From: Hemiscyllium ocellatum
Taxonomy: Eukaryota
Direction of reading: 5' to 3'
Assembly (NCBI RefSeq): GCF_020745735.1
Contig: NC_083417.1
Coordinates: forward strand, 63,612,001 to 63,676,000
DNA: 64,000 nt
The translations under genes and the position numbers were made by a program. Under the pieces are notes generated by a model that saw nothing but the letters and a program-made list of their open reading frames with translations, was not told the origin of the DNA and made no database searches. This document shows positions 29,504-63,077 of the stretch, in pieces (position 1 is the first letter of the stretch; each line of letters starts with the position of its first letter).

Positions 29504-29558
29504 ATGACAGCCAACACCATTTTTCTCTGCGTGATTCTCCAATGGATTATTCATATAG
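29504..29558 (+). CDS. Gene B exon 1: signal peptide MTANTIFLCVILQWIIHI
   Basis: 55 nt, phase-1 donor AG|GTATCA, same size as the gene D leader, hydrophobic core, frame-compatible with the V exon. Confidence 0.8.
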
Positions 29559-30033
29559 GTATCACTAATTTATGAAATGCTTCCGAAACATTTTTACACG
29601 GTTTAGAGCAAGCTACGTCCTCTACCCGACTATCCCTTAACGAGGACGTGATGTAGTAGTGATAGCTAATATTCAAATAACGCGAAAGGTTTGAAATTCA
29701 ATTTGACTTCACGTAGTGTGTTTGGAATATGAATCTCGAGTCAGTAAAGATGACAATGAAAAGATAGTCGATTATCATTAAGAACTAACTAGCTGATTGA
29801 TTTCCATTCTTAACGTTAAGGAAGGAAATCTGCTATCCTTTCTTGCTCCTGACGACGTGATCTGGAGCAATGTGACTGACGCTTAGCTTTCTTCTGAAAT
29901 AGTTCAGAAGCCTCTCAGAACCGGAGTAGTTAGGAAAGGGCAATGATGCCTTTGCTAGCTATACTCATGTACCATGATTTTTTAGAATGGTTGTTTATTT
30001 TACAATTAATATGAACTTGCATATTTCTGCCAG

Positions 30034-30354
30034 CTGCGGATCGTACTTCATTCACTGTGTCCCAGGCACCTGAAGAAGCGAAAGTTCTCAGAGGAGAGAG
30101 TACTACCTTCTACTGCATATTTCCTCTCTCGAACGACCAAACTTGGGTACGGGTGTTATGGTGGAAACACGCCGAGAATGAATACTTGCGTACAAGCACA
30201 GACAAGAGAAAGAGGTTTGGGATGGAAAGTAGAGCAAGCGGTTTCCTTCAGCTACTGGGTGTGACAATCCAAGACGCTGGGATCTATCACTGCACCGTGA
30301 TCCGCCAGGGAGAGGTTAGAGGCAATGGCACTGGATCGCGTTTAACTGTGTATG
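30034..30354 (+). CDS. Gene B exon 2: germline-joined VJ-type Ig V domain
   Basis: TTTCTGCCAG acceptor, G|GTAAAT donor, 321 nt, phase 1-1. VSQAP..G.STTFYC..VLWWK..LQLLGVTIQDAGIYHC..GNGTGSRLTV. Confidence 0.93.
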
Positions 30355-30480
30355 GTAAATGAATATGTTGAGCAGGGATCTTTTGAAACAGTTTTATTAT
30401 ATCCTCTTTGTCAGTATAAAGGTGGCTATTAATACAATTCGCGATCATGCTCCTTGTTTAAATCTACTAATTAGACAGAT

Positions 30481-30655
30481 AAAAATCACACACCACCAGG
30501 TTATAGTTCAACAGGTTTATTTGGCAGCACTAGCGTTCCGAGCGCAGCTCCGAAAGCTAGTGATTCCAAGCAAACCTGTAGGACTATAATCTGATATTGT
30601 GTGAGTTTTAACTTTGTACACCCCGATCCAACACCGGCACCTCGAAATCATGGCT
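30481..30655. mobile_element. Penelope-type inverted-repeat element in the gene B V-C1 intron
   Basis: AAAATCACACACCACCAGGTTATAG is complementary to CTATAATCTGATATTGTGTGAGTTTT. Centre GCTCCGAAAGCTAG; same family as 4625-4791. Confidence 0.7.
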
Positions 30656-30861
30656 AATTAGACATGTAGCGTCACACGCAAATTGCGACCAAATGATCTA
30701 ATATTAATCAGTTAGACTGGAACTGCAAAGGCAACATATGCATCAACTTAATTATCGCGAAAACTCGGAACAGTGTTCAAGTTTCTAACAGATTGAAAGC
30801 TTTTGTGTTATTGTGTTCCTCTCCCATCACCTTTCCCAGCTACATGTATACCGCCCTGTTC

Positions 30862-30975
30862 CTCGGTACTCTCAAGTGAAGAAGGGTCACTAGACCCGAA
30901 ACTTTAACTCTTTATTTTCTCTATAGATGCTACCAGATCTGCTGACTTTGCTAGCAATTTTTGTATTGTTTCTGA
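30862..30975 (+). mobile_element. Penelope-type short element with degenerate hammerhead core
   Basis: GTGAAGAAGGGTCACTAGACCCGAAACTTTAAC...ATAGATGCTACCAGATCTGCTGA. Confidence 0.55.
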
Positions 30976-31792
30976 GTCCCTGTGTAATACGCATCTCCGA
31001 ACCAAACACCTTGCTTAGGTTTTTTTTAGTGCACGTTTCCGCCTAACGTTGCCTTGGTTAATCGGCATGCCTGAAATTTAATCTCACATATTGTCAGAAT
31101 TGAGGAATTCAACGTCACTGAGCTGCTAATTGTCGAATAAATGATTTACCCACGATCTGGAGCTTCAAACACATGGATTGCATCACTAGCGCCCAATAAA
31201 TAAAATAAACAGAGGTTCGGTTTTCCTGAAATCTCTTGGTCTTCAGCTGAATGCATTGTATTCCAATAATTGTTATACTCCAGCTACGAGTTATTCCAAA
31301 GCTGGTAAAGCCCCCATTTATCACAAAGATTGTGCATATTGTTGACCACATACCTCTTAGTATGTATCAAACATGTAAAGATTCATTGTTTCAACCGACT
31401 CCCTTAAATTTCGATTTTGGATTATGGAAGCTAAACACAACGTAATAAGACTTTTCGATTGCTCTGCCGAGTAATTTAAATTTTGAAGAACTCGAAACGT
31501 CACATTTGTTTTCTCTCTACAGATGCTGACAGACCTCCTGTAATTCCGTTTTGATTTATGTTAATTCAAAGTCTTGGTGTTAATAACATAGGTAAAATTG
31601 ACTCAGTCGTCGATTTCTATCTGAGGCATTGAGAGGACGCGCATAAAATATGTTTAAGATTAAAAAGAAAAGAGTCTGCGCCTTCGAATGCCGTCGTAGT
31701 AAAAATAAGCGGTCTGAACTTAGATAAGAACAATACTTAGTTTCTCCTAAACTCATACAGTAACTTAATTTTGTTCATTCTGTGCTTTGCAG

Positions 31793-32104
31793 CGGCCCCA
31801 ACACCACTAACTATTGTCTCCGGGCTATCAGAAGGGAATTCCTCTGCATCACTGGCTTTAAACTGTGAAACAGCTGCGTTTTATCCGGAAAATCTCACAC
31901 TCACTTGGTATAAGAATGGTGTTGAATCTGCATTCGGAATAAAGACAAGTAAAATAAAAAACACGGAAGGACTATATAAAGTTTCCAGTACTTTAGTTGA
32001 GACGCAATCTGTCCTGAGTGGCACTAATTATACCTGTTCGGTAAAACACGTCTCTCTCCAGGCGCCAGCTGTTGTCAACTATACCGTTTGGAAATCTAAT
32101 CGAG
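31793..32104 (+). CDS. Gene B exon 3: C1-set Ig constant domain
   Basis: TTTGCAG acceptor, G|GTAGGA donor, 312 nt, phase 1-1. LNCETAAFYPENLTLTWYKNG...GLYKVSSTL...YTCSVKHVSL contains the C1-set hallmarks. Confidence 0.93.
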
Positions 32105-32830
32105 GTAGGACACGGACTTCCAAAGAAAATCCGTAACTGTTGAATTCGTAAAGACCAATTCGGTACTTAGCGCATATTATTAAAAATAGGGACGGAGCAT
32201 TGAAGTCTGAAAGAAAAAGATAAACGAACAACAATGTTTACCAAATGTATGGCGCATTTCAGCCTGATGTTCTCAAAACCGGGTCATATCATTCGCCACA
32301 CAAATATTCTCAGTTCAATTTATTTAATTGCAAATTCATCCACTGCATTTACAAAATGGCAAGAATGGAAATTAAGAGCAGAAGTCGGCCTAAAAGCTTG
32401 CATAATCTGCTTATTACCGATTTTTAAAATCAACTCCAGTCTCCAGCACGATCCCCATATTCATCGGTTGCGTTAGTGCCACAAATGCTATAGATTGCGT
32501 CTCTGATGGTCAGAAAGTCGTTCTCTCTGGAGTTGAGATTGCTGAAGATTCAGAGCCTTTGAAAAAATAAAATGTCCTAATAGTAGTGCTAAATAGCCGA
32601 ACTCTCAGCTTGTGAAAATAACCTGAAAGTCTAGATTCATGCCAAGGGGTAACAGAAAACTCTTCTTCTTTATGTAAACTAGACCCTATATCGCTTTTTA
32701 TTAAATGATATTGAATTATTACAGACACAGGAATTTATCTCATAAACAGTTTTAGTCCTTTTTGCAAAATATAAAACAGAAATTTAGCCACTTGAGCAAG
32801 TTAATATCTACATTCATGTTAATCTTGCAG

Positions 32831-32944
32831 ATATTGCCCATATGCCATTTTACTACTCGTGCCTCAGATACATGGTGGGTAGACTGGCGTTTCTATTACT
32901 CCTGATTATCACCGGGTCGCACTGTGCAATAGAGTTTGAGAAAA
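32831..32944 (+). CDS. Gene B exon 4: stalk + transmembrane helix containing Arg
   Basis: ATCTTGCAG acceptor, A|GTAAGT donor, 114 nt, phase 1-1. DIAHMPFYYSCLRYMVGRLAFLLLLIITGSHCAIEFEK; Arg codon AGA at 32881-32883. Confidence 0.85.
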
Positions 32945-34521
32945 GTAAGTTTAATGTGATATTTTGATTTTAATACAGATATCAGTTGGTGATAGATTGA
33001 ACGTTAATGAGTATTCCAGGGAACGATCATTATTTTTGAACCAACAGTCTCTTTTCCCGACGAGTCACTGTGCTTTTTTCCCGGAAAGTAATAAATTCTC
33101 CAGTTCAAAACACAAAATTATGTGAAAAATGGATCTGATCAGCCAGATATCAGCAATTACAATGTTCACCGGCAGCAAGGACTGAATCAAATTTGACTTT
33201 ACACGCTCCGTTTGCAAACATCTATCCTGACACCGCAATTAGTTTTTGCGAGGTTTTGAGGGTGTTAGCCTTGAAATGGTTACAGACCATTGTTAGTCTC
33301 TACAGAGGATAGAGTTTCACTGTTGCAGAAATCAGCATTAGAAAAACAGGTTCAATTTTTGCACAATCTATAGAAATGTCTTTTTAAAAATCGCATTCAA
33401 ACCTTTTTAAAAAAAAATCATTATTTTTTAAAACAAGTAGGAATTGATGTGAAAGCTGTTCATAGCTATTTTATTGCTTCAACATAAGTCGAAGTCTAAA
33501 GCGAGCTTAACGCCGCGATCAACCGATCTGTTCATCCATGTATTTCCCACAGATGAAAATAACCAATCTTTGTAGTTTTGGACGTATTCTTGCAATGACA
33601 AATGCCTAACAGCAGGCGCTAAGGAATTAAGCTGGTTTTTCGAGAGTAAAAGGTCGCTGTTACGGAGTGCCATTTTCTTTCCCACGACCAGTGTGTTCCT
33701 GATATAACCAAATAAACAGACCGGAAAAAACCCGGAAAATGCCGTTGAAATCCAAATACATAGTAAAACAGCATAGTTCTACTTGCATATTATAAATCGG
33801 TTGTAAACTTTAGCACATTTATACCTGCGCTGTACTGAGTCCATTGACATATTTAGATATTTGTTACACAATGAGCGAACTAATTACGTACTTTCGCAGT
33901 CGCGATTATTGAACAGCATTCATCATGGTTTCTGCGCGTTATGTTTCACCATTGTTCAGTGTTTCACTAATAAAACAATGAAAAGCAATGAAGTCGGCAA
34001 TGAAGTATTTCCTTGTGGAGTGTACAGAAAGCATAGGTCTAAAGTGCTAACACTTTGCATTGGCGCAATCTTAACGATTAAAACCTCTAGAGTCATTCTC
34101 GAACAGGACCTCCTGTGAACATGCAAGTTGTGCTGAGAAGTGAATCAACCATCCAAAGATCACCACAGGTACTCATATTGCTGTGAGAAATGGTACTATA
34201 AAGTTGGTTGCCTGCAGTCATGTATTGTAGTTCAGGCTTTTTGCGCTTTTTTACAACCCTTTGCTTAATCCTTCGAGCACCAGCCTAAAAAAATCACGAA
34301 TTAACAATTTCCCAAAACATCAATTTTCAGACCAAACAAGAGAAGCACGGGACTGCAGAATAATCAAGCAGCCAAAGAAAACGGAAGAATATTTAAAAAT
34401 ACTGTCAGCCAAGAAGAAGCGTAACGTATCAAATGATTGCATCATTGAATGGAGACTGTAATCGTCTGCGGGTTTTGAGAGGACTTGTAGCTCAGGTTGA
34501 GGTTCTGGATGTAGGTTTGCT

Positions 34522-34738
34522 GCTGAGCTGGAAGTTCCGTTTTCAGACGTTTTGTCATCATATTAAGTAACATTTTCAGTCAGTCTTCAAATGAAGCACT
34601 GGTGGTGTAGCCCGCTTTCTCAAACTCAAACATATAAATAGAAAGCGGGCTACAGCACTAGTGTTTCATTTGGAGGCTCACTAAAGATGTTACTTAGTAT
34701 AATGACAAAATGTCTGAAAATGAAACTTCCAGCACAGC
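34522..34738. mobile_element. ~99-bp-arm inverted repeat from a Penelope-type family (decayed hammerhead-like cores)
   Basis: 34522-34620 is the approximate reverse complement of 34640-34738, with a 19-nt spacer. The right arm reads CACTAAAGATGTTACTTAGTATAATGACAAAATGTCTG. Confidence 0.75.
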
Positions 34739-34942
34739 ATACATCCAGAACAATAATTGTCTGTTATTTCATAGATACTTCTGGAAATTTCTGTAATAAA
34801 ACAACAATGTGCTTTTTTGAGAAATTAGTAGTTTTTAATGCAAGGTATGCCACACTATTTAGTCATCATGATGTGCATAGTCAATAAAACAAAATCCTGT
34901 TGGATCATTTTCTTCTCCATCAAACATTTGTGTGTTTTTCAG

Positions 34943-34968
34943 GTACTACTATAAAGCCTGATCTTTGA
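34943..34968 (+). CDS. Gene B probable last coding exon: STTIKPDL-stop
   Basis: TGTGTTTTTCAG acceptor; phase 1 continues the frame to TGA at 34966-34968. I found no ITIM-bearing exon downstream. Confidence 0.55.
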
Positions 34969-37900
34969 TTTGCATTCTGACCCCTAGAACAGACAATTCT
35001 TTTGATTTGTTTGATCTGTGAACTGGTGGAATCCTTTCCTGAACACAAACAACTCGATTCAAAGTAGGAGATGTGTTTTCCGATAATGTGTACGATTGTT
35101 CATTTTATTTCTAAGGGACCCATTTAGACAATTATTAGACAGGAGCAGAAGAACGACTAGCAGCTGAAAAATTGCAATGGATTTGTTTTAATTGAGATTA
35201 TCCCTGCTTCACAGTGGCTGGCTGATCACCTGAAGGACGGTCAATAATTATTTGAGTTGTTTTAGGATTATCTCACACCAATTCTACAACTGTGCCATGG
35301 TCAAAAGTTTATGACGAATTTTAAGGATAACTTTATAAAGAAGCTATCTCACAATTGTTCTGGTATGACGAATTTGTAATTTAACATGCTTTTTGGGATC
35401 TATAAAGTTACAATAGAAATTAAGAACAGACGTTTCCAAAATACTGTACTCCACTCGCAAAATGAACAATCTCTTGTCATAACTTTTCATGATGAATGAC
35501 ATTAACCTTTTTCCAAGCAAATACCATTTTGCTGCTGAGGACATTCAAATCCTATATTCTGTATAGTCTCTGTGGTAAAAAAAAATCTTGCTCGACTATT
35601 CTCCTTCATTCTTTCTGATTACATGAAAGTTGTCCCACGATCAGTCAGCTGCTAGGCGGTGGAATCATTTCATCACGACTTGCGCATCATACTATAGGAT
35701 CGATTTGAAAACGTTTGTCAATATTTTAACCATCACAGACAACGCAAGGTAAACTCAGCAGGTCGACCAGCAGCTGTGGAGAGAGAAACGGAATTAAAGT
35801 TTTCAACTTCTTTATGATTGTTCTTCAGAGCTGTCAGTCTTTTTAAATCCTTGGAGACAGGGGGAAAGGGAAACAAACAAATTCCCACTCTTTGACATTT
35901 AGCTGGCTCCTTTGATCTGATGTTGCAGTCTTCCTTTACTATTTATGTTGATCAATACTTCCTGTTATGACGCGTGATCTCACCAAATATGAAACCAAGG
36001 CCTGTCCTTCGCACTTTCACTACATGATGGACTTTTGTAGACACCATTCATCTGTGCCTCTTCGTTCCTCATCACAACTAAAAGTCTTATTATTCACGCT
36101 ACACATTTTTCTCAGATTTCAGCGCGTGAAATTCAATATTTTCTACGTTTGTGTCTTGCATCAGACTTGCGAAGTAGAAACATTGCCAGCAGCACGTCGC
36201 GTTCAGAACTGTCACTATTTGTTTGACTCCCCAAAATACGTTTACTGCAAATTGGATTGCGTCTCAATTAAAGTACTGGAAATGTTATATGGTCCCTCGG
36301 TGTTATTTACTTTACTTGTCTTTATTCCGAGTGCAGATTCAATACCATACCCCCACACAATGCGCCCTTCCCCGCAAATCACTACCTTTGAAGATAACCG
36401 GACTCCACAGGAAACAAACGAACAAAATGCAGAACCCGTGAGACATCTCTGGGCACGTCCTTCTTTTTCAGTTGGGTTCCTCTAACTTAACTTTTCTTTT
36501 GTCTCCTCTTGCCCATCGGCCTACACTATTCGTACTTCGTTTTGCCTATATGGTGTGCAATGCCAGCTGAAATACTTCTGGAAATTCAGGTAAAATGCAC
36601 CTGCTGCACTTAACTGTTTCCTCTGTTAATTCTTCAAAAACTTCTGTAAGACAAATACGATCTGCCTTTTTTATACATTCATGCTGACTATACTTGATTC
36701 CTTTCGAAAGATATTTAGTTTAGTGCTGAAAGACAGAGGACAGGGTGTGACGTACTTAAATCCTGAACTATTTACCCCCTATGAAGTTGCAATCAAGGTC
36801 ACGCTATATTTGTCATCTCAGAGTCATGCAGTAATGAAGGTCCACAGCACAGAAAAAAAACCTTACTGTTTTAAGCCGATATAATATATTGCCAAAAAGT
36901 TGATCTTAAGTGAACACACTCCAGATTATTTTGATAACTATGCATTCAAAAATAACAGAGCAGTTAAGAAAAACATGAACATTTCGGCGTTCTATCATTG
37001 CTCGATTCTGATAAGAGGAAAGATGTTTACCAAGGGTTAATTCAGATGCTCGAATTGGTTTGCTAAATGTTAACACAAGCAATAAAGCTGAGAAGGTTAA
37101 TTTTTTAAGTATTTGGTTAGCGCGATTCATGGTAACGTCACTTCTGTTGCATGACGGCATTAACGAAACATCACGTTTCATCGTAACTGCAACAAAAACA
37201 TCTAGCCTTAGCAGCTCTAGTAGGACTGCAAAAATGTTTAAAGGCCGCACTGGGCCTTCGAATTTCATGACAGACATCAGTCAGACAGATATATGAGAAT
37301 GTAATGCAAGTTCCATTTATTTTTAACACTTTAGTTATTTGTAAGCACACAACCAACACTATCTAATTGGCTAAGTGGAATCTAGATACAATCCACGCAT
37401 GTTCACTCTGACGAGTTATACTATTCTCGCCGAACTCAGGGTCTTCTCTTAATGTAGGTTGGTTAGCTTAATGATCCAGGTTATGTTTGGAATATAGCAA
37501 ATTGTCCAACTAATATTTCACATCATTGCCTACATTGGGTCACCAACACGTCCACTTTATTGGTTCAGTGGTTGTTCCCATCCCTTGGTGCCATGGCATC
37601 GTCCATCCACAAGGGCACGTCAATCCTTGAGTTTTATCTTATTATCTACTTATCGTCAGATGCAGGGTAAATCCCCTCTCTGGTCAGTTTTAAGTCATTA
37701 TCATTGCTTTGTATTTAGTCTTCAACCCTAGTCTGATTAACGGTAATGGTAGCTTATTTGCCTATTGGGCGTTGCTGATTTTCTCTCTCGTGCACCCTTG
37801 TTTTGCCAACTCACTCTCTCGTATGCTCCCAGCAGGGGCTGATTTGTGGTTTGTTATTACCTTGGTACTCCTCGGTTTTTGTCCGTTAGTGGTATGAAGA

Positions 37901-37977: not shown

Positions 37978-38910
37978 CATAATACAACAAGATCATAATA
38001 CATTGGAGGAAAAATTAGGCCATTCAGCCCATCGAGTCTGCTCCACCATTCAATCATGGCTAAAAACGTTTTCAACTGCATTTCCCGTTTTTTCCAGGTA
38101 ACCTTCGATCTCCTTGGCAATCAAGAAGTTATCTTGTTCTGTTTAATATGCACTCATTGACCTGGCCTCCACAGTCTTCTGTGAAAATGAATTGCACAGA
38201 TTCACAACTCTCTAGAGAAATAAGTTTCTTCTTATCTCCGTTCTAAAGGGTCTTCCCTTTACTCTTAGGCTGTGCTCCCGGGTCTTCGTCCCTCTTGAGT
38301 TGAGAGTGTGTTGCCAGAAAATCTTCATCCCTCTTGCCAGTGGAAATATTTTCCCAGCTTCCATTCCGTCCAGGCCATTCAGTATTCTGTAATGTTCAAT
38401 CATATCAAGCCTCATCCTTCTAAACTCCATCGAGTATCGCCCCAGAGGCCTCAAAAGATGCCCATATGTTAAATTTTTCATTTCAGGGATAATTCTCGTG
38501 AACCTCCTGTGGACCCACTCCAGGGACAATACATCCTTCCAGAGTTATGGGGTCCAACATTGCTCACAATTCTCTCAATGTGGTCTATCCAGCGCTTCAG
38601 AAGTACATATCTGCTTTGATAATCTTTCACACTTAAGGTGAATGTCAACACTGTATTTGCCTTCCTAAGTACTGATTCAAACTGCAGGTTTTCCTTAAGA
38701 GAAACCTGGACTAGGATTCCTAAGTCCCGTTGCACTTCAGACTTCTGATATTCTTCCTCATTTAGAACAGAGTCCACATCTATATTCTTCCCCAGAAAGT
38801 GCATCACCTCACATTTTCCCACAATGTATTTCATCTGCCACTTCTTAGCCCACTCTGTTAACCTTTCTAAATCTTTCTGCAGCCTCCCTCTCACCTCAAT
38901 AGTACCTGCC
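37978..38910 (-). mobile_element. 5'-truncated CR1-clade LINE
   Basis: Minus ORFs LQKDLERLTEWAKKWQMKYIVGKCEVMH and LEWVHRRFTRIIPEMK; reversed tail near 37980. Confidence 0.85.
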
Positions 38911-40174
38911 TCTTCGGTGCCTTTGGAGAGAAAAAATCCTTTTTCCAATGACAGGAAGTTAGAGAAAATACGACGTATGTGCATATTACGTAAATTGACG
39001 TGTACTGGTGGGAGACTTTGTTGGGATGTCCAATTCCCTGCGACACTGGTGCTGACTGGGCAGCCTTGGTATACATTGATAGTTGTCAAAGCAGTTCCAC
39101 ACCGAGTTTGCCTTTAAAGCTGTCTGTGTAGATATGACATTCTGTTTTCCTATTTCAATCCTGCAGCGTGGAGGATCCATCAACAAAAAGTTTAAAGAGT
39201 TTTGCTGTTGCATGTATTTCATGCTTTCATACCTTTGCCTACATTTGTTCCCTCCCCGTCACCCCTGGCCTGTTATTTGGGACAAATGGTCCTTTGCCAT
39301 TATTTGATGCCACAATCTGAGATTCATGTGGGTCACCACTTGGACTACGTTTACCAGTGAGAAAAGTGGACACTCTAGTCTGTTTAATTTCAATTTTTCA
39401 ACCTTGTAATGAATTCACCTTCTTCCCATGTTCCTGATCTGACATGTTTGCACAGTTTCATTATTTGCTATTATGCGTCTTATAATTTCTTCTTTAACTT
39501 TGGAGTTCTTTTTTCTCTCCCTCTCACTTATATAATTCCTTGAAGCAACTGGCTATTGCCATAGCCTTACTGATTTTCCGGGTGTGGTTCCCTGCTCTCT
39601 ACCTCCCAAGATTGTTTTTCACACAGGTTCTGAGCCTGTGGTGATCTCCCACAATATTTCATCATAGTCTGATCACTCACAACTCACACACTTTCGAAGC
39701 ACAGTCTCCTACTTGAGGCAATTGTCCACCATTTTCTAAATAACTAATAATCTAATCCTAATCAAAAGGAAAAGTGAGAGGACAGGACTGAAGTTCAGTG
39801 ACTCTGCTCTGCTACATCGGGCTTGTGTCTGAAGGCATTTTTTCTTTACTGAATTGCCATCTGATTCCTCGAGTCAATGCATCGGACATATGTTCAACAT
39901 GCCCTCAAGGATGACTTCGAGACTTAACTCCTGTGTATTAACTAAAGCAATTCCTCAACTGCGGTCATTTATCCATCAAACCAGAAAAAACTACTGGTGT
40001 ATTGACCCATAAACTAGTCGATTACTTCTATTTCCTTCACCCACTTAATGCATGGACATCACATGAGGACTTAACCTATAATTTCAGGATCAGGCTGGGT
40101 CATTGTGATGTATCAGGATTTGATGACGTGAATCCCAGAGTGACTTCAGTCACATTATGTTAGGGCGCACCTAG

Positions 40175-40363
40175 NNNNNNNNNNNNNNNNNNNNNNNNNN
40201 NNNNNNNNNNNNNNNNNNNNNNNNNNNNNNNNNNNNNNNNNNNNNNNNNNNNNNNNNNNNNNNNNNNNNNNNNNNNNNNNNNNNNNNNNNNNNNNNNNNN
40301 NNNNNNNNNNNNNNNNNNNNNNNNNNNNNNNNNNNNNNNNNNNNNNNNNNNNNNNNNNNNNNN
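40175..40363. other. Assembly gap (189 N)
   Basis: Run of N. Confidence 0.99.
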
Positions 40364-40385
40364 GACGGGAGGAAGTAGTCATCAA

Positions 40386-40515
40386 AGAAGAAGAAGGAGA
40401 AGGAGGAGGAGATGAAGATGAGGAAGACGATGATGAAGAAAAAGATGAAAGGAAGAAGAAGAAGAAGGAGAAGGAGAAGGAAGAGTAGAAGGAAGGAGGA
40501 AGAGGAGGAGGGAAG
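40386..40515 (+). repeat. Purine-rich (GAA/GAG/GAT)n low-complexity tract
   Basis: Directly visible next to the gap; explains the poly-R/E/S ORFs at 40382-40669. Confidence 0.9.
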
Positions 40516-42664: not shown

Positions 42665-42725
42665 ATGATGTCGAATGCCAAGTTTCTTTTAATTCTCCTG
42701 GCGCTCCTGGACCTCACTACCGCAG
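42665..42725 (+). CDS. Gene C exon 1: signal peptide MMSNAKFLLILLALLDLTTA
   Basis: 61 nt, CAG|GTATCT donor, phase 1, classic hydrophobic leader. Confidence 0.88.
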
Positions 42726-42899: not shown

Positions 42900-43220
42900 A
42901 TGCATCAGATTCCTCTGTGAGCATACGTCAATTTCCCCCAAAGGCAGTTATATCAAAGGGTTCCGACATCACTCTCTACTGCATTTTGCCCCTTTCTCAT
43001 GATAATTCAGGGTTCGAGGTACGTTGGTGGAAACGGGGTGAGAATAAATTTCTCCAACCAGGAGTAGATAAAAGGAAACATATTGGTGTCAAGTCTAAAG
43101 GATCTGCTAAACTGGATCTGCGAAACGCGATGCTCCAGGACTCAGGAATCTACCACTGCACAGTAATCCGACAGGGAGCATTTTATGGGAATGGAACAGG
43201 AACTAATCTAACTGTCTGCA
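42900..43220 (+). CDS. Gene C exon 2: germline-joined VJ-type Ig V domain
   Basis: TACTTCCAG acceptor, A|GTAAGT donor, 321 nt (same as gene B). ITLYC..VRWWK..LDLRNAMLQDSGIYHCTVIRQG..GNGTGTNLTV. Confidence 0.93.
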
Positions 43221-43947: not shown

Positions 43948-44253
43948 TTTCTCCAGCTCCAATAAAGATTTACACAAAGCCACGCAAGGACAATTCATCG
44001 AAGTCTCTGACTCTTGTGTGTCAGACGAGTGCGTTCCATCCAGGCGATTTTACCCTCGTTTGGTATAAAAATGGCATCGCAATTGCACCGGAGATAATTA
44101 AAAAACAGAACGCTGAAGGACTATATGAAGCTTTCAGTTCTTTGGAAGAGGCGCAGCCTGAGCGGACTGAAGTTGTCTACATCTGTTTGGTAATACACAT
44201 CTCTCTCCGGACTCCCACCATTGCTATCCACACTGTGACAAATACCTACTCAG
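43948..44253 (+). CDS. Gene C exon 3: C1-set domain
   Basis: TTTGCAG acceptor, CAG|GTATGA donor, 306 nt, phase 1-1. LVCQTSAFHPGDFTLVWYKNG...GLYEAFSSL...YICLVIHISL. Confidence 0.92.
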
Positions 44254-46499: not shown

Positions 46500-46608
46500 A
46501 AAAATGATAAATACCAGTTTATCTGGATGTCTGGCTATGTGATGGGTGGACTGGCAATTCTGTTATTCATCATCATTGTTGGGTTCAAACTCTGTTCAAA
46601 AAATAACG
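46500..46608 (+). CDS. Gene C exon 4: transmembrane exon, neutral TM, out of frame by 1 nt with the canonical C1 donor
   Basis: ATCTTGCAG acceptor (same as gene B TM), G|GTAGGC donor, 109 nt. TM frame KNDKYQFIWMSGYVMGGLAILLFIIIVGFKLCSKNN starts in phase 0; A5 run at 46500-46504. Confidence 0.8.
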
Positions 46609-48663: not shown

Positions 48664-48707
48664 GTAAAGAAGAAAATGTAACAACTGTGAATTCTTATGA
48701 TGAGCAG
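48664..48707 (+). CDS. Gene C exon 5: cytoplasmic exon GKEENVTTVNSYDEQ
   Basis: ATTTTGCCAG acceptor, CAG|GTAAGC donor, 44 nt, phase 1-0; same size and phase as gene D exon 5. Confidence 0.8.
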
Positions 48708-49218: not shown

Positions 49219-49341
49219 CCAGTTGCGACCCAAAACGTGATTTGTACTGCAGTAGAATTGAAAAACACCAATAAAACTTCAAGAGGTCGAGATGACCAAG
49301 AGGCGACAGCGTACGCACAAGTGAGGCTCAGAAGGTCATAA
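49219..49341 (+). CDS. Gene C exon 6: terminal cytoplasmic exon with degenerate ITIM (VICTAV) and ITSM (TAYAQV)
   Basis: CCTTCTTGTCTCATGCAG acceptor, phase 0. PVATQNVICTAVELKNTNKTSRGRDDQEATAYAQVRLRRS-TAA. Confidence 0.82.
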   Translation, partial: PVATQNVICTAVELKNTNKTSRGRDDQEATAYAQVRLRRS

Positions 49342-52300
49342 AGGAAATGTTGATGCCCCGTGAAAATCAATGAATCAACAATATTTTCAAACGTCGGTTG
49401 TTCATGTAAAGCAGGGGACTGGCCGAATAAGGTAACAAGTTTGACTCCAGAATTCTCTGGATTTGAGAAATCCGAACAAACTACAGAGAGAAAAAAAACT
49501 AAGGAAGCATAGAATTTATCGAGAAAATCCAAAGCAATCAAGACAGTTTACAGAGAATCACCAGCTGAAGGGCGCTGCAATTTTGAGCGCACTAAACCGT
49601 TATTCTTGTTTCACAAACAGTGACGTGTTTCATATTGTTCCATTTGCGATGGAAATTCCATTTGACGTGCTATGAGAGAGCCCGGGATCCGCACTGACAG
49701 TTTAGCTCTTTTAAAATGAAGGCATAAATTGTCCCCCTGCGTGTATCCAATTATTGAGATGTAGGATATTTGACCGCTGTAGAAGGTAAAACAGCCATTG
49801 TGGTTTTTAATTATTTTGTAATTATTAGTCAGCTATACACATACAATAAAAATTGCTTTCAAGATAAATCTGCATTGAAATATATTTACAAGGTCGTACC
49901 ATTATATACTTACTGTCATGCGTCTACATTTTATCATGCACACGAATAGATTCCTTCCTTCTAGTTCCAAATCGACCTTAATGCAATGTGCATTTTCTTT
50001 CAGAGAAAAGAACAGAAAATTGTATTTGAACTTCACAAGTTATGTCAGAACGTCCGATTTTCATTCAGGGCGATCGTCCTGGTTTAGAAATAAAGCATTT
50101 CCCTCCATAATCTGAGTGAAGCTCACTTCTCAATGACACGTACACAGCTGAGCTCTGGGTTGGCTTTCCATTTCATTTGGAAACTTATTGCTACTCTTTG
50201 CGTATTCGAGTATAATCTTGTAGCTTCCATAATACACAACAGGCCGTTAACTTCAACTAAGAGAAGGGTTCTGAAAGAAATAATGAGAAGTTATTCGGGG
50301 TATTATAAATTAATGAATGAAAAAACATGCTAAACTAATTACATCCTCGTTGTAGAAAATAAAACACATCAAATTGTTACTTTAATGTTTCAGGGTTTGT
50401 CAATTAATGCATGTAGGTTTTTGCTGTGAATCATTTCTTCTATTACTGAGTCTGGTGCCAGAAATGCTATAAATCAGAGTTCAAAATATTGAGTTGAGTC
50501 TAAGTTGGGAGTAACTTGACTAATTTATTTGACCAGGCATTACTGCAGATAGTGAGGGGAGGAAATTAGCCAACCAGGCCAGAAGATTAAATATATTTAG
50601 GGCCTGATTTTTAACTTTCTGTGGATGGACTCGAATTTGGGGAGAATATTTTTTGCGTTTTACAGTGAATACTATTACAGAATAATGCATGCACGCAGAA
50701 AGGTAATTTCAACAGTCAGCAATTGAAACTGAACACTTAAGTTTTTCACTTTTACCTTTTATACACCTTTGATTGACCGTTAATCCCGCAATGAATGTGT
50801 TCATCTGCAGGATTTCACATTCGTCATATTCCACTTTTCAGTAGATGATAGATTCACACTTATGGAAATTCCTGAATCCTCGTATACCAATGACTTATAT
50901 AGCTTGTGCGTAAAAGCACTAGAGAATCAGGCAGCTGTGACATCAATTATTTCCATGTCAAAACTCCTACATTTATCATTGTGCTTTGTTTCTATGCCTC
51001 AGCCTTATTATTTTGTGATCCATTGTAGCGAATATATCCGTTCGAAATTCCATGCAATTACATCTGGGAATTCTTGCTTTGTCGCTTCCCTCTGCTACTG
51101 TTTCAAGTAATATCTAGTTTCAGTGAAGAGAAATCAAGGGCACTGTACTTAAAAAAATAAGTCTGCTGGTTGCTCTTGATAAACTTGTGCTTGTAGAAGT
51201 GTTTGGAAATTTTTATCGAACTTGTGGGCGGGCCCATCAAATATAAATAAACAATTTTGTCACTACATATTTAAAAATAACTGTTGCCACATTCGTTCAA
51301 CATTCTTTTGAAAACTAGGTGGCAGGTTCTTGAGAAGTGGAAAAAATAATGAGTAAACAGCTAATTAAAGTTTCCGTCTTCTTTTGTTCCATAATAAGCA
51401 TTGCAAAATGTGAAGGCACGTTTGTGGGTTGTCGAGGCTAAGTCAAGAATATGACTTGATAACTCATTTCAGGTGAGCCAGTGCCAACTTTAACTTACAT
51501 GCTAATTGCAACACTCTGAAAATATAATGTTTGCAAAGCGATGGCTATTCCAACTCACAGTTCAATGCAAACGTAGACGCAGATGTTTATTTTAAACAGC
51601 AATTACGCTCGATATTTTCCATTATAAATGTCCCAAAACACATTATCAGATTGCAGTTGTAACCTGGTCACTTTAAAACGGGCTTAAATGATTCCAATCT
51701 TTTCACCGTTCAATGTCACATGACATGTAGATTTTTCTTTTGCTAACTGCGTGACGAGGTCGAGAATAAACTGGACTCTTAAGTCCATTATTTTTAGACG
51801 TGAAATGCAGGGCGGTAGATCCAGGGAAGTGTATCGAACTGAAAATATTATCTGAATTGATAGATGAAAGTTTCAGGAACTCTATTAGCGTATATCGATG
51901 ACTGCACATTTTCAGAATGCTCACCTTACACAATGGAAGTATGGAGGCACTAAGACTGCATCCTGGGGAACTGTAAGACAATTGGACATACAACTGCGTT
52001 TCAGAGGTGTGCTAGCAACAGAAAATTCTCTCTTGTTTAATTAAGCAGAAACAAAGCTGCATATTTATTTGTATTGAAACTGTAGGCAATTAGGCACGAG
52101 ACTATGTATGTGATATTAATGGATTTTCAAGCAAATAAGCAGTCGTTACTAATTTTGCAAGGTTAATTTATTAGTTTCCCAAACAATTGATACATGTCCT
52201 GATGACCATCTGAATAATCTATTTCTCCATGACCTATTTATCCTCAGAGATTTTAGTTAAAGAACATTAATGAACCTGATGATTTTTCCCAACAATTAAC

Positions 52301-57440: not shown

Positions 57441-57470
57441 TGACGTTACAACCACAGACATGAACATCCA
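57441..57470 (+). promoter_or_regulatory. Gene D proximal promoter candidate: CRE/ATF-like + RUNX site
   Basis: TGACGTTA (57441-57448) followed by ACCACA (57451-57456) and CAGACATGAACATCC, ~100-130 nt upstream of the ATG. Confidence 0.4.
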
Positions 57471-57571
57471 ACGGCATTGCCTCACACTACTTATTAGGTT
57501 ACACACTGGCATTTTTCGCCAAATACTGTGTCTTTCGTGTTATCTTCTAACTTCAAGAACCATTTGTTGAT

Positions 57572-57626
57572 ATGGCTGTGAAAGCTGTGCTTCAGAGTAT
57601 ACAGCTCATAAAGATCATTTTCATTG
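57572..57626 (+). CDS. Gene D exon 1: leader MAVKAVLQSIQLIKIIFI
   Basis: 55 nt, G|GTATTT donor, phase 1, followed by a 93-nt intron ending CTCTTACAG. Confidence 0.72.
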
Positions 57627-57719
57627 GTATTTTCCAGAATTCGCTCTTTGTCTTTATGTTTGTCTCATGTTTTCTCTCTAAATCTTCCTCAGTGTTTTAC
57701 AAACACTTTTCTCTTACAG

Positions 57720-58034
57720 TTGCTGCTGATGTTCCTGTTGAAGTGTCCCAGAACCCCGAACATATCTATGCCACAACTGATACAAACATCACATTCTATT
57801 GCACGTTTTCTGTTTTTCAAGACAAACAGGTGATCATTTATTGGTCGAAACTTGGTGAAAATGAATTCATTCAGACTGGATCAGACGACAGGAAACGACT
57901 TTCCATCGAGAAAGGAAGAGCCTCATTACAACTCCTGAATGTCAGTGTCCAAGACTCTGGAGTCTATTATTGCAGACTGACACGCCCGGGAAACAGAGCC
58001 GCAAATGGAAGTGGATCAACACTTGTCATTCGTG
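57720..58034 (+). CDS. Gene D exon 2: germline-joined VJ-type Ig V domain
   Basis: 315 nt, phase 1-1, G|GTAAGA donor. VSQNP..ITFYC..IYWSK..LQLLNVSVQDSGVYYC..ANGSGSTLVI. Confidence 0.93.
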
Positions 58035-58261
58035 GTAAGAGATGTTCAATGGAGTAGACTGAAAATTCTCACACTTATTACAATTAGAAAAATGTAATTG
58101 GCATCACGTTTTTCTCTTCCTTGGGCGTTCCATTAATGCTTAAATTAGAAAATAAATGTCTCAAAAGAAATATTTAATTAAGAATCAGATGATATCCCTC
58201 TACGTCGAGGTTCCACGATCTTGATTTCCTAACATTGTTTCGATTATTTCATGCACGAAAA

Positions 58262-58565
58262 CTCGCACAGACCAACTAATCTGCACGTCTTTGGACTATT
58301 GGAGGAAACTAAAACACCCAGAGTAAACCAATAGAGACACGAGCGAACGTGCAAACTCCACACAGTCAACTAACCGTGGTTAATGCTTTGGTTTCTTCCC
58401 ATAGCCTAAAATGTGCAGGATATGTGATTTGACAATGCTAAATTATCCAGTAAAGACCAGGGATATGCAGGCTAGTAGGATAGGGTAGAGGACTGGGTCC
58501 GGGTAGTGTGCTCTTTGGATGTACGGTGCACTCTTGATGGATCGAATGGCCTCTGTATACACGGT
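58262..58565. mobile_element. HE1-type SINE pieces in opposite orientations (gene D V-C1 intron)
   Basis: ACTAATCTGCACGTCTTTGGAC...GTGCAAACTCCACACAGTC (minus) followed by AATGTGCAGG...ATGCTAAATT...GAATGGCCTCTG (plus). Confidence 0.65.
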
Positions 58566-60190
58566 AGACATGATTCTAAGCGTTTCCATGTCATTCAAGT
58601 ATGGATATTGAGTGGAAAATTACTTGAACATTGTTTAGTATAGGAAACATTTGAAAGTATTAAACTTGTTTTTGATGACTGTCAAAACAAAAACAGTCAA
58701 GCTAAAAGTCGTTTAAATGTATTTGAAATATAATTTCAATCAAAACAGGATGTGTAAATTTGCTGCATGTGATCAGCTTTGAATGTTGTGTGCCAGTTTT
58801 TCTGCGGTAAAAAAAGGAAGTCTTTGATGTTGCAAATTCTTTTTCCACATTATTACGTATTTTAAAGTGTTAGTTAACTATAGCTGACATAATGGCAAAA
58901 TGCTTTAAAAGCAGAAATCTGAACCTACCAGATAATTAGTGATAATGCTTGGTGGATACATGTTGACCAAAAAATTGGGACAATCACAATTAACTTGTCT
59001 GATCTATACTAGAGCATATTTTACTTTCATTGAAGAGGTCAGAATGGGCTTTGGTGTATTCTCCTGGATATACTGGCTGCTTTCCATTGCAGCGCTCTCT
59101 CCGTACGATTCTAAAGGATTGGCCTTGATTGTTTCTCCAAATCTATTGTGTAGAGCTTGGAGCTGACACCCGTCTTGGAGTGAAGCGTGTTTCCACGTGC
59201 TATGAGAACATGGTGTTTTCCAGCTCGAAGAATCAAACACTCGACTGTTTGGTCGCATTTGTAGTTTTCAGTTGATTTGGTCAGTTTTTGGTGGGCTAAC
59301 GCAAGACGGTGAATCACCTCAAATCCCTTCAGAAGCAGGAAAAAACTTAATAACGAATGTAATTACTTGTTTCTTGAATTTTGTAAACTCTATTTGCCTC
59401 AGTTTAAATCTCCGATATATCTCCCACTCTGAAGTAACTCGCGAAACGTAAGAGCATCTTTATCTAATTCCCTGACTGAGGCTATAGAGTTCTCAATCAT
59501 GTTATGCCTCCCATGTTTATTTCAGCAACAAGATGGATTGTGGCTTTGAGGCGACAATTCCTCTGCTCACTGCAAGTAGCCACACAGACTGAATATATTC
59601 TGGAAGTTTCCTCTGGTCACATATTGATGGCGTATTGAAGTTTGCCAAAAGGAAAGTTATCTCATCTTCACTACCGTGGCATCCTGAAATTCATTGAACA
59701 TTCTTTAATTTGTTTTCTTCCTCATCAGGTGATGCAGGAAAGATAAATTTGGAGATCCAGGGAAAATTGTAATAAATTTCGAAATCCAACCCCACTTGCA
59801 GGTTGCTATGATCCGAATACGCTATCTGGAAGGCCATTAGAATCAGGTTCAGTAGGAACTTCAAAAGGCCGTGGATCAATGCTTGAACCTGATCATTTTC
59901 ACACCGAAGGGAAAGAACAGATACGAGAAAATTATTGCATAATTCTTCCAAGAAAGCAGCGTGGGCAGGATAGACCAAAATAGCAGGTTTGCTGTACCAT
60001 CCTATGATTATATAAAAGACCATAATTGATAGACAAAGCATTCACTTCACCTTTACCACTCATGCTATTTGCTGTTATTTGCTGTTATAGTCTATCCAGA
60101 ATAATTGAAAAGGGTCCTCCATAAAATGGACGCCATTCTAATTTGCAGAGCAGACGAGATTGTTAACTTCCTTGTTCGTTGTTTCACCAG

Positions 60191-60505
60191 CTTCTCCAAC
60201 TCCATTGAGGATTGTTTCCCGTCCCTATGAAAGTAATGCACACAGTTCTTTGTCTTTGGCATGTGAAATGGATTTGGTTTTCCTGAACGGTCTGACTGTC
60301 ACTTGGTGCAAAAATAATCGAAGCACTGAGAATGGGATAAATACGACCACGAAACTACTCAGTGGCGCAGGGCTGTATAAAATTTCAAGCTATTTGGAAG
60401 AAGCACGGCCTATCCAAGGAAGAACTGTTTTTGTCTGTCTGATGTCTCAAGCGACCCTACAGATTCCAGCCATGGCCATTTACTTGGTCCCTATTTCTCG
60501 TCTAG
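60191..60505 (+). CDS. Gene D exon 3: C1-set domain, divergent
   Basis: GTTTCACCAG acceptor, TAG|GTATGA donor, 315 nt, phase 1-1. LACEMDLVFLNGLTVTWCKNN...GLYKISSYL...FVCLMSQATL. Confidence 0.88.
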
Positions 60506-60659
60506 GTATGATGCTACGCTCAGCAAACACAAAAACAAAAAAACTCAGATATAGTCTGACACAAAAGCTCAGAACATACTCGCACAATCCAAATTATAAG
60601 AAACCTGCAAGTGCAATATTTCTCTGCGCAAAATCTCACAACCTATGATTTGTAACGAG

Positions 60660-61880
60660 GAGGTCATGCCTGATCAACCAAATTTAAATTTGCAAAGAGG
60701 TGAACATGTATGCAGATAGCAACAATGCATTTTATACACTCTATGCCGATTTCAGCTATGTTTTTGATGCAATTCTGCACGGGAAAGTGGAAGAAAATAT
60801 AGCAGATCATGGGATCCAAGGAAATTTGTCAAATTGGGTCCATAATTGGCTGAGAAGCAAGGAGCAGATAGTTATGGTTGACAGGCGTTTTTTCAATTGA
60901 AAACCTGAGTTCAGTGGGGACCCACATGGATCGGTGTTAAGCCACTGCAGTTTATGTTTATGTGAATGCTTTAAACTTTTATGTATGAGGGTTGATCAAT
61001 AAGTTCACAGTTAATATAAAAAAGACGGTGGATGGTAAATATTAAGTAGGATTACTTTAGATTACACGAGGATATGGACGAACTGGTCAGATGAGCTGAT
61101 CAGTGAGAAGTGGAATTCAATCCAGAAAAATGCATGCTGATGTAACTGGACAGGAAAGACAAGGCAGGGAATACATGGTAAAAGCTGGGACCCTAGGAAG
61201 CATCGAGGATCAGATGGTATGCTTGTTACACTTATACACTAGCCACTTAAGTTTCAGGGCAGCGAATGATGAATTGATTAAGAAGGCATTTGGTGTATTT
61301 GCTGTTGATAGCCAAGGCGTAAATTTAAAAACAGGGAAGTTATTCTGGAACTATAAAATTGTTCATTCGCCACAGCTAGTGTATGATATGCAGTTCTGGA
61401 TTCCACTTTATGGGAGGGATGTGATCGCACAGGAGGTGATGCAGAGAAGATATACCAGGATATTACTTGGACTGCAGAGTTTCAGTTATGAAGACAGACT
61501 GGACAGACTGGGATGTTTTCTTAGAGCAAGTGAAATTGAGAAGGGACTTGACTGAGATTTATAAAATTTGAAGGGGACAGATAGGGTAAAAGGAGAAAGA
61601 AACTGGTCCAATCAATGGAGCAATCACTGAGTGGGGTTAGGGAGAGTGAGTGGAGCAAATAGATTTACGCTAAGAAGCAGAAGGTTTAGACCAGACGTAA
61701 GTGGGAAAAGGCGTTTTCGACAGAAGGTGGAGGAAATTTGGAATTCAATGACTGTAAATGTGGTAGAGATAGAAATCCTCATAAAATTTAAGAAGTATGT
61801 GGATGTATATTGTACTTGCAAAGGCACATGAGACTTTGGGTCAAGTGCTGGAAACTGTGATTTTAATAGTTAAGTAGTTA
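60660..61880 (+). mobile_element. Decayed CR1-clade LINE RT/3' fragment in the gene D C1-TM intron
   Basis: YADFSYVFDAILHGK, VHNWLRSKEQIVMV, MQFWIPLYGRDVIA..VMQRRYTRIL. Confidence 0.8.
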
Positions 61881-62298
61881 CCCTTACTGGCATGAACACA
61901 TAAAGCCTTCTTCTATTTTGTAGATCTCAATAACTGTATGGCAACACCACATTTCAATGTTTGCTGCTGAATGAGTCGGTGCTGGGAATTATACTGCAGT
62001 AATAACCATGGAAACTAAGCATTACCTGAGTTTTAAAAATCTGTTCAGTATAACAAGTGCTTCACCCTAGTCATAATTTCCAGAACAATCAGGTTCGCAA
62101 TTTTTGGCAGACCATATCCTTTGAATTAGTTACATCAAGACATACCTAACGTAATACAACTCCACAAAGGCATGCTTGAATAGAATTCCACATGATGACA
62201 GAGGAGTACAACTTGAAGCAATTAACTCGTTAAACATTGAAAAAAAGCTCAATTGTCATATATAGCACCATTTCTGAAAGTGAGTATTAATTTTCCAG

Positions 62299-62415
62299 AA
62301 GATGACAACATGTTTCCCACTTATTTACGGATCTTTGGATGCACAGGATTTGTACTGATGTTTTTGGCACTGCTGGCTATCATTAGAATGTGGCACATAT
62401 TCGGTAACCACAAAG
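62299..62415 (+). CDS. Gene D exon 4: stalk + neutral transmembrane helix
   Basis: TTTTCCAG acceptor, AAG|GTAAGA donor, 117 nt, phase 1-1. EDDNMFPTYLRIFGCTGFVLMFLALLAIIRMWHIFGNHK. Confidence 0.87.
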
Positions 62416-62544
62416 GTAAGATATCATACTATCATTTAACGGAAACCATTCAAAAATCAACAGAAGTAGTGAAATACAATATTGCTTTAATATTGGTATG
62501 AGTGTAAACGTACTTTGTTCTCAGTTTTTGCTTCTTTTTACACC

Positions 62545-62780
62545 CAAGTGTACAATTCACGCCTCAGGCGACTGACTGTGTGGAGCTTGCACATTCTTTC
62601 CGTGTCTGCGTGGGTTTCTTCCGGCTGCTCCGGCTTCCTCCCACAATCCAAAAATGTGCAGGTTAGATGAATTGGCCATGCTAAATTGCCCATAGTGTTA
62701 GGTGAAGGGGTAAGTGTAGGGGAATGAGTCTGGGTGGGTTGCACTTCGGCGGGGCGGTGTGGACTTGTTGGCCGAAGGGC
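62545..62780 (+). mobile_element. HE1-type SINE (5'-truncated)
   Basis: GACTGTGTGGAGCTTGCACATTCT...ATGTGCAGGTTAG...GGCCGAAGGGCCTGTTTCCACACT. Confidence 0.82.
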
Positions 62781-63033
62781 CTGTTTCCACACTATAAGTT
62801 TTATAATCTAAAAAGTCGGAAGTCTGCTTTTGGGGATCTGTGTGATTAAATACACTAAGAGAAACATTTATCCAATATTTTGCTCCATGTTATAGACAGA
62901 AATTGAGTCAGTAATTTTGCTCCCATTTGCCAACCAATGGAAGAGTAGATATGACTTACTTTGCCCTGACTGTAAATTGATATTTACTTGCGGAATCATT
63001 TCTTGCAATGACATGTGAAATTTTGTGTTTTAG

Positions 63034-63077
63034 CAAACAGACAGAGAAACGATGAAGCAAGCCATTGCGGCAACTCT
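63034..63077 (+). CDS. Gene D exon 5: cytoplasmic exon ANRQRNDEASHCGNS; terminal exon not found in the window
   Basis: TTTTGTGTTTTAG acceptor, |GTAAGT donor, 44 nt, phase 1-0, matching gene C exon 5. Confidence 0.78.

Follow-up and report, generated by a model that had tools for sequence, protein, structure and literature searches.

Three tandem VJ-C1 receptor genes of the shark Hemiscyllium ocellatum as predicted members of a multigene family of cartilaginous fishes

Introduction

Genes in which a variable (V) domain and a joining (J)-like strand are encoded together in the germline and followed by a C1-set constant domain (non-rearranging VJ-C1 genes) bear on the origin of antibodies and T-cell receptors (TCRs), and sharks are a source of such relics, namely UrIg and UrIg2. 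A stretch of 64,000 nucleotides (nt) from the shark Hemiscyllium ocellatum (contig NC_083417.1, positions 63,612,001 to 63,676,000 of the forward strand; called the window below) contains three tandem genes with this domain order, here named B, C and D. What family do these genes belong to, and do they form a paired activating and inhibitory receptor system, as a first-pass annotation of the sequence had proposed? We give a probability of about 0.7 to the reading that the tandem genes of the window are part of a large multigene family of type I membrane receptors evolving by birth and death, which is found, as far as the searches show, in cartilaginous fishes only. A gene of this family would code for a leader, then for a single germline-joined V(J) domain and a single C1 domain of antigen-receptor type, and finally for a transmembrane (TM) segment and a variable signalling end. 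The pairing of activating and inhibitory forms is found at the level of the family, and the three genes of the window are members of three old lineages.

A common exon plan in three tandem genes

The window is AT-rich vertebrate DNA (GC content 0.35-0.42), in which six stop-free stretches on the + strand carry immunoglobulin (Ig) hallmarks and resolve into three V exons and three C1 exons. It turned out that they belong to three genes, all on the + strand, which start 13.2 and 14.9 kb apart, and both this spacing and the sizes of the V and C1 exons (Table 1) agree with the first-pass annotation. All six exons have AG/GT borders with phase 1 on entry and exit, and all six are above the curated cut-offs of the Pfam models (V-set for the three V exons, C1-set for the three C1 exons). 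The order of exons is leader, V, C1 and TM in every gene, and splicing of leader to V to C1 leaves the frame open in B, C and D alike. The TM exon follows the C1 exon at a distance of 0.7-2.2 kb, and a tblastn search of the three genes found no second C1 exon or other Ig exon between them.

Each V exon ends in a J-like G strand of the form G-x-G-[ST]-x-L-x-[VI], immediately followed on its 3' side by a GT donor. We scanned both strands of the window for recombination signals (heptamer CAC[AT]GTG, a spacer of 11-13 or 22-24 bases and a nonamer with at most two mismatches) and found none. Since the V and J-like parts lie in one exon without recombination signals, V(J) is joined in the germline, as had been recognised from the sequence at first reading.

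The V domains of B and C are 48.6% identical over 105 residues, which is close to the half that had been counted by hand, while the values are 43% for B and D and 37% for C and D. The C1 domains of B and C share 42% identity.

Table 1. Positions of the exons of genes B, C and D and of other features in the window.
Feature	Position	Strand	Description
Upstream TM-like exon	6223..6336	+	114 nt; AG/GT; phase 1-1; GIFDIVVGSLAIIILLLILADDF
LINE-type reverse transcriptase fragments	15953-16931	+	Pfam RVT_1; upstream of the cluster
B leader exon	29504..29558	+	55 nt from ATG; donor GTATCA; phase 1; in-frame splice to V
B V exon	30034..30354	+	321 nt; strand GTGSRLTV; Pfam V-set E 2e-8
B C1 exon	31793..32104	+	312 nt; Pfam C1-set E 1e-12
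B TM exon	32831..32944	+	114 nt; phase 1-1; segment LRYMVGRLAFLLLLIITG; two Arg
B candidate last exon	34943..34968	+	STTIKPDL-stop; reached through the GTAAGT donor; from splice signals only
Inverted C1 pseudo-exon fragment	36233..36346	-	between B and C; in-frame stop
Assembly gap (N run)	40175..40363		intergenic, between B and C
C leader exon	42665..42725	+	61 nt; phase 1
C V exon	42900..43220	+	321 nt; strand GTGTNLTV; Pfam V-set E 4e-11
C C1 exon	43948..44253	+	306 nt; canonical donor GTATGA; phase 1
C TM exon	46500..46608	+	109 nt (111 nt in the Chiloscyllium punctatum orthologue); TM neutral
C alternative cytoplasmic exon	48664..48707	+	44 nt; used by the C. punctatum model P0036
C last exon	49253..49341	+	ITSM-like TAYAQV at 49306-49323, then stop; phase matches that of the TM exon donor
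C alternative last exon	~49964..50087	+	tail free of tyrosine motifs; 85% identity to P0036 residues 241-281
D candidate leader exon	57572..57626	+	55 nt; followed by a 93-nt in-frame intron
D V exon	57720..58034	+	315 nt; strand GSGSTLVI; Pfam V-set above cut-off
D C1 exon	60191..60505	+	315 nt; Pfam C1-set E 3e-7
D TM exon	62299..62415	+	117 nt; phase 1-1; 52% identity to the TM of P0079
D candidate cytoplasmic exon	63034..63077	+	ANRQRNDEASHCGNS; phase 1-1; from splice signals only

Signalling ends of genes B, C and D

Gene B keeps an open frame over four exons with canonical splice sites, and its V exon is 67% identical to a protein of Scyliorhinus canicula. An Arg in the TM segment and a short tail had been noted for this gene, and both are present in its spliced model. 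Of the two Arg, the first stands in a column which is Arg in short-tailed relatives (P0001 FRYTVGG, P0156 IRCTVGG and P0183 SRCVMGG) and Gly in relatives whose tails carry immunoreceptor tyrosine-based inhibitory motifs (ITIMs), and the second stands where the rest of the family conserves Gly. The tail has 16-17 residues and no Tyr, whether the GTAAGT donor is used or read through to an end in SKFNVIF-stop. Scans for motifs and hydrophobicity gave no credible ITIM exon for B or D. Judged from its predicted protein, B looks like a classic adaptor-dependent activating receptor.

Gene C had been described with a neutral TM and an immunoreceptor tyrosine-based switch motif (ITSM), on introns which are all in phase 1. 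The TM is indeed neutral, and the exon with the ITSM-like TAYAQV, which is conserved in Chiloscyllium punctatum, is in phase with the TM exon, but the frame does not run through from C1 to TM. Compared with the C. punctatum orthologue, the TM exon lacks 2 nt directly 3' of its acceptor; as a result the canonical junction reads G/AA AAA TGA (the slash marks the junction), that is Glu-Lys-stop, and canonical splicing stops two codons into the TM exon. Gene C is frame-broken in the present assembly. The sole route found to a membrane receptor with TAYAQV is a weak alternative donor (GTGACA, after base 44234, phase 0).

Besides, gene C has candidate exons for a second tail without tyrosine motifs, the last of which has approximate borders taken from the match to P0036, with a failed acceptor check at 49964. 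Because the 44-nt alternative cytoplasmic exon shifts the phase, the TAYAQV exon cannot come after it, and the two tail types are mutually exclusive.

The orthologous locus of C. punctatum (L001) is collinear with the window (92.5% identity over 7.8 kb), and a five-exon model with canonical splicing has an uninterrupted frame there from ATG to stop; its TM is neutral, and its C-terminus carries ATAYAQV. In Chiloscyllium plagiosum, the model P0010 has an ectodomain 95% identical to that of C and ends by read-through after C1 without a TM, which suggests that the gene predictor met the same problem there. Between gene C of the window and C. punctatum, the ratio of nonsynonymous to synonymous differences per site (pN/pS) is 0.41 in the V domain and 0.31 in C1 (pS 0.08). 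Such low ratios indicate that the ectodomain of C has been under constraint, so that the break either arose recently, is compensated, or is an error of the assembly.

In gene D, leader, V, C1 and TM form an open frame with canonical splice sites, and in P0079, a relative of D type, the same short intron between leader and V is read through. Its C1 domain is the most divergent of the three, having no FYP and WC instead of WY, and Arg flanks the hydrophobic core of its TM on both sides. A tail of several exons had been proposed for D. We found one candidate cytoplasmic exon, whose frame is open toward the end of the window and which contains no recognisable motif; with the alternative acceptor at 62896 the protein would end three residues later. 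The nearest relatives of D, namely P0079 and the D-type portion of P0151, end in short tails that lack ITIMs. P0151, a gene model of Scyliorhinus torazame, is a B-type V exon fused to a complete D-type V-C1-TM gene. This fusion suggests that B-type and D-type genes adjoin in catsharks too, and that the local gene order may be conserved.

Distribution and phylogeny of the family

A HMMER search with the V domain of B against 1.84 billion cluster representatives gave 184 matches (79 at E<=1e-10), mostly proteins of 220-400 aa. All of the relatives with a visible source are chondrichthyan. They come from sharks (Scyliorhinus, Mustelus, Heterodontus, Heptranchias, Stegostoma, Chiloscyllium, Cetorhinus and Pristiophorus), rays (Mobula, Hemitrygon, Hypanus, Pristis, Leucoraja and Narcine) and a chimaera (Callorhinchus), and in several species many members lie on one chromosome-sized contig. 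The automatic names which NCBI gives to these relatives include SIRP-alpha-like, SIRP-beta-1-like, tapasin-related-like, CD276 homolog, Ig lambda-1-like, MHC class II beta-like and NCR3 ligand 1-like. Such inconsistency is expected for a family without a curated reference. The family had been thought possibly uncharacterised, but dozens of its proteins are already predicted in the NCBI annotations under these names; it is publicly predicted and unnamed, and the window alone reveals no new kind of system.

We built a maximum-likelihood tree of 94 V-C1 ectodomains (proteins longer than 520 aa were left out), with branch support from the Shimodaira-Hasegawa-like approximate likelihood-ratio test (SH-aLRT). 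Gene B falls in a clade (SH-aLRT 96, then 97) with proteins of Heterodontus, Stegostoma, Mustelus, Scyliorhinus, Heptranchias, Hypanus and Mobula. The clade of gene C (99) contains proteins of Chiloscyllium, Scyliorhinus, Mustelus, Heterodontus, Pristis, Mobula and Hemitrygon, and that of gene D (96), which lies within a different major branch, contains a protein of Scyliorhinus torazame and P0079. This membership means that the duplications are older than the split of the shark orders and, for B and C, older than the split of sharks and rays, in line with the old duplication of B and C which had been supposed from their identity.

Both types of signalling end occur across the family. Members with an intramembrane Arg have tails of at most 41 residues, mostly without ITIMs, and the members of inhibitory type combine a neutral TM with between one and four ITIM/ITSM motifs; by a crude TM call, one motif or more is present in 29 of the 40 members with a neutral TM. 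Tails with four motifs are confined to relatives in other species and are not found in B, C or D, and ray, chimaera and some shark relatives show alternating xTYAxLDL and TxYAQ/TEYAEL motifs. What's more, the two types are mixed within single clades. The B clade holds the ITIM-tailed P0002, P0152, P0153 and P0154 together with P0001 and B itself, which have the Arg and a short tail, and the C clade holds four-ITIM ray proteins together with P0156 and P0183, which also have the Arg and a short tail.

Judging from these predicted ends, the activating/inhibitory pairing is real at the level of the family, since both tail types occur within the B clade and within the C clade, some species having the ITIM-tailed form and others the form with Arg and a short tail. 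This much of the first-pass annotation, a non-rearranging VJ-C1-TM family of cartilaginous fish with activating-type and inhibitory-type members, is borne out by the relatives. The pairing of B, C and D with each other has to be given up. Strict paired receptors consist of activating and inhibitory partners with near-identical ectodomains. B, C and D share 37-49% V identity and sit in separate ancient clades, and are therefore not partners in the strict sense; what is more, C is frame-broken.

Surroundings of the cluster

Upstream of the three genes, the TM-like exon which had been reported as a fourth TM exon is present, outside the range of 29504-63077 that had been given for the cluster. 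It is matched by 37 family TM segments, and these similarities are weak (best E 0.015); it contains acidic residues (FDIVV...LADDF) and bears a weak likeness to the second TM type of the family. Probably it is part of a fourth gene, with V and C1 exons located ahead of the start of the window.

Between B and C lies an inverted fragment of a C1 exon, covering the C' to E strands, which is 66% identical to residues 42-79 of the B C1 domain (tblastn E 6e-11) and is what remains of a member of the family that was lost or rearranged. Besides the fragments of long interspersed nuclear element (LINE) reverse transcriptase upstream of the cluster, two open reading frames (ORFs) of similar appearance, at 38478-39089 (- strand) and 61103-61555 (+ strand), had no Pfam match; the latter sits inside the intron between C1 and TM of gene D.

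The window contains an assembly gap; from the last exon proposed for B to the gap there are about 5.2 kb, and from the gap to the C leader 2.3 kb, with no family exon detectable near it. Its flanks (2.9 kb on the left, and from 40588 on the right) are found in the same order and orientation in L001, about 640 bases apart there, which means that the two sides are continuous in order and that no reading frame is interrupted. We rejected the possibility of an exon of B or C being hidden in the gap, because the gap is intergenic, lies beside a simple repeat and has collinear flanks. This repeat, purine-rich (GA/GAA-type) and located at 40364-40500 directly to the right of the gap, is its likely cause. 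Also 5' of the gene C leader, about 4.2 kb of L001 (4680-8919) are missing at window position ~41575, reflecting an insertion or a deletion between the two species.

Proposed function and points against it

In the reading that we favour, gene B would be a receptor of activating type, whose intramembrane Arg would find its partner in the acidic TM residue of an adaptor with an immunoreceptor tyrosine-based activation motif (of the FcR-gamma, CD3-zeta or DAP12 kind), and whose tail of 16-17 residues would give no signal of its own. In this group of sharks, the lineage of gene C would be a neutral-TM receptor with a single C-terminal ITSM-like TAYAQV, which on phosphorylation would recruit SH2 phosphatases or adaptors. 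In the window itself, the canonical transcript of C would end at the start of the TM exon, so that either the product would be a soluble V-C1 protein or the allele would be null, except if the weak alternative donor is used or the 2-nt loss is an assembly error. Gene D represents a third and more divergent lineage, the relatives of which have short tails free of motifs. As the V domains of B, C and D are less than 50% identical to each other, a shared ligand is unlikely, and the three receptors probably bind different ligands.

Several points tell against this reading. The exon junctions of B, C and D are models made from genomic sequence, and the last exon of B as well as the leader and the tail of D are placed by splice signals. 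The second Arg in the TM of B, an unusual change from the conserved Gly, might just as well be disabling. The pairing with adaptors and the recruitment of phosphatases are proposed by analogy with mammalian paired receptors. The association between intramembrane Arg and tail type over the family (Fisher p 0.02) comes from a test which ignores relatedness and uses a crude TM call. Finally, decay is under way in parts of the cluster, as is shown by the frame break in C, the inverted C1 fragment and the transposon load.

Carried further, the last point leads to the explanation that the cluster in the window is largely non-functional and consists of decaying birth-and-death duplicates, to which the LINE reverse-transcriptase fragments upstream, the Gly-to-Arg change in B, the loss of the conserved FYP and WY from the C1 domain of D and the purely genomic basis of the gene models would also fit. 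We think this improbable for the cluster as a whole. B and D each keep four open exons with canonical splice sites and a Cys-Trp-Cys core in both Ig domains, the ectodomain of C shows purifying selection against its C. punctatum orthologue, and orthologues of each gene have been kept over very long times.

Comparison with known receptor families

The ectodomain of a B-type protein (P0001, residues 43-245) was modelled by AlphaFold from an alignment of 15 sequences, which gave two Ig domains with a predicted local distance difference test score (pLDDT) of 87. Against the Swiss-Prot models, Foldseek placed many families in a narrow band (E 5e-13 to 3e-11, 14-22% identity), including Ig kappa, SIRP-alpha of four mammals, SIRP-beta-1, Ig lambda, B7-H6, CD276, TCR beta, CADMs, PD-L1, tapasin and TAPBPR. 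Against PDB, the listing was filled by antibody light chains (E 1e-15), and the modelled elbow between V and C1 differs from that of light chains (TM-score ~0.45). By its predicted fold, the ectodomain stands at the same distance (~20% identity) from Ig light chains, SIRPs, B7-H6 and tapasin.

Searches of solved structures with profiles of the family gave no discriminating nearest family, as multi-domain proteins and antibodies swamp the matches. For the C1 profile, a lambda-type constant domain came first (39.5 bits), followed by the C3 domain of UrIg2 (9dmx, 35.5 bits). The V domain and the V profile matched V domains of TCR alpha, light chains, PD-L1 and VNAR, and the 60 best matches to solved structures that were listed, be it for the V domain of B or for the family V profile, include neither NKp30 nor SIRP. 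With language-model features, full-length inhibitory relatives were nearest to SIRP-alpha clusters (score 0.97, 215 of 256 features), and the V domain alone was nearest to 'antigen receptor' and PD-1-type clusters.

The SIRPs (SIRP-alpha, beta and gamma) are paired receptors of myeloid and lymphoid cells. As in SIRP, a joined-VJ V domain and a C1-set domain are followed by a TM, and the signalling end takes one of two forms, a tail with ITIMs or a short tail combined with a basic TM residue, and the alternating tyrosine motifs of the ray, chimaera and some shark relatives are reminiscent of the SIRP-alpha tail, which has four tyrosines. SIRP names are the commonest of the automatic names of the relatives, SIRP-alpha and SIRP-beta are among the top Foldseek matches (E 5e-13, TM 0.74), and SIRP-alpha clusters are nearest by language-model features. 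SIRP is also a recognised joined-VJ protein, listed with CD79, NITR, CD8, NKp30 and PRARP (PMC11599192). All of this would fit an explanation in which the family is the cartilaginous-fish co-orthologue of SIRP, descended from one ancestral gene with SIRP-alpha, beta and gamma and having lost or never gained a second C1 domain, and the genes of the window are shark SIRPs.

We consider this possible but unlikely. The identity to SIRP (18-22%) is no better than that to Ig kappa and lambda, B7-H6, CD276, TCR beta or tapasin in the same search, and the family, at about 20%, is no closer to SIRP than to other V-C1 proteins. The solved-structure matches are dominated by antibody light chains. The sequence searches, of which the word-based ones are limited in reach, returned no bony-vertebrate protein, in agreement with the family not being a set of simple orthologues of SIRP or tapasin, an outcome for which the first-pass annotation had asked to check. 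A search with the ITIM tail of one inhibitory relative also gave no SIRP; since it matched only paralogues of the same species, no homology of the tail to SIRP-alpha is established. Besides, the SIRP ectodomain is V-C1-C1 and the shark genes are V-C1, and the basic TM residue of the shark family is an Arg near the outer leaflet, whereas that of SIRP-beta is a central Lys. The 64-kb window itself contains no flanking marker genes by which linkage to the SIRP locus could be judged.

With Ig light chains and TCR chains, the family shares an ectodomain of V followed by C1 and the J-like G strand. The shark genes differ by having V and J in one germline exon without recombination signals, by encoding their own TM and signalling ends, and by the V-C1 elbow. 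It is conceivable, at long odds, that the family is no offshoot of SIRP but a surviving membrane-bound VJ-C1 lineage from before the recombination-activating genes, closer to Ig light and TCR chains than to any innate receptor. If true, it would be a signalling-competent, non-rearranging relative of the antigen receptors, expanded in cartilaginous fishes alongside UrIg and UrIg2.

UrIg and UrIg2 are non-rearranging VJ-C1 genes of elasmobranchs (PMC12227049, Flajnik et al. 2025). The family resembles them in having a non-rearranging VJ exon followed by a C1-set exon and in being restricted, as far as the searches show, to cartilaginous fishes, and among the solved structures matched by its C1 profile UrIg2 (9dmx) ranks second, below a lambda constant domain. 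UrIg2, however, has further C domains after C1, with ten Ig domains in all and antibody-like homodimers (PMC12227049), and the shark genes described here go from a single C1 exon to the TM exon.

NKp30 (NCR3) has a germline VJ-type V domain too, and gene B shares with it the TM Arg and the short tail. The G strand GNGTGSxLTV resembles that of NKp30. Kinlein et al. are said to have described a shark NCR3 (NKp30) family in 2021, and the genes of the window could be members of such a family of MHC-linked VJ receptors; the chimaera relative P0011, which is V-TM-ITIM without C1, would suit this. We regard it as very improbable indeed. NKp30 is a single V domain without C1, whereas B, C and D all splice a C1 exon in frame. 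NKp30 was absent from the 60 best solved V matches listed and from the nearest named Atlas clusters shown for the V domain; the NKp30 resemblance pointed out at first reading comes down to a generic strand of GNGTGS type. The NKp30 gene is linked to the major histocompatibility complex (MHC) in its class III part, adjoining AIF1 and LST1, and the 64-kb window contains no MHC-like genes, including these two. NCR3 has moreover been treated as a 'VJ domain gene' (PMC12227049), and UrIg has been presented as the novel non-rearranging VJ-C1 gene (PMC10751288, Verissimo et al. 2023).

B7-H6 (NCR3LG1), CD276 and tapasin-related proteins combine V and C-type Ig domains with a TM, match in Foldseek (E 2e-12 to 1e-11) and lend their names to some distant members of the family in the NCBI annotation. 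They differ by low identity (16-22%) and, in tapasin, by a large extra N-terminal domain; they are not known to have a J-like G strand or paired signalling forms.

Full-text searches of the open literature, which did not cover the key papers on shark NCR3 and B7H6, gave no description of a shark SIRP-like or V-C1 paired family. Dozens of predicted VJ-C1-TM genes in sharks, rays and chimaeras, with repeated switches between activating and inhibitory ends, have no agreed name, and the family merits a curated description and a phylogeny against SIRP, NCR3, B7H6, Ig and TCR. The window adds three members of three old lineages to it, namely one clean member of activating type, one recently broken member of ITSM type and a third.

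In conclusion, compared with the known systems, the family appears to consist of V(J)-C1 receptors which would work like SIRPs, orthology to SIRP being unproven, and on its architecture it falls outside NKp30, UrIg and the rearranging receptors.

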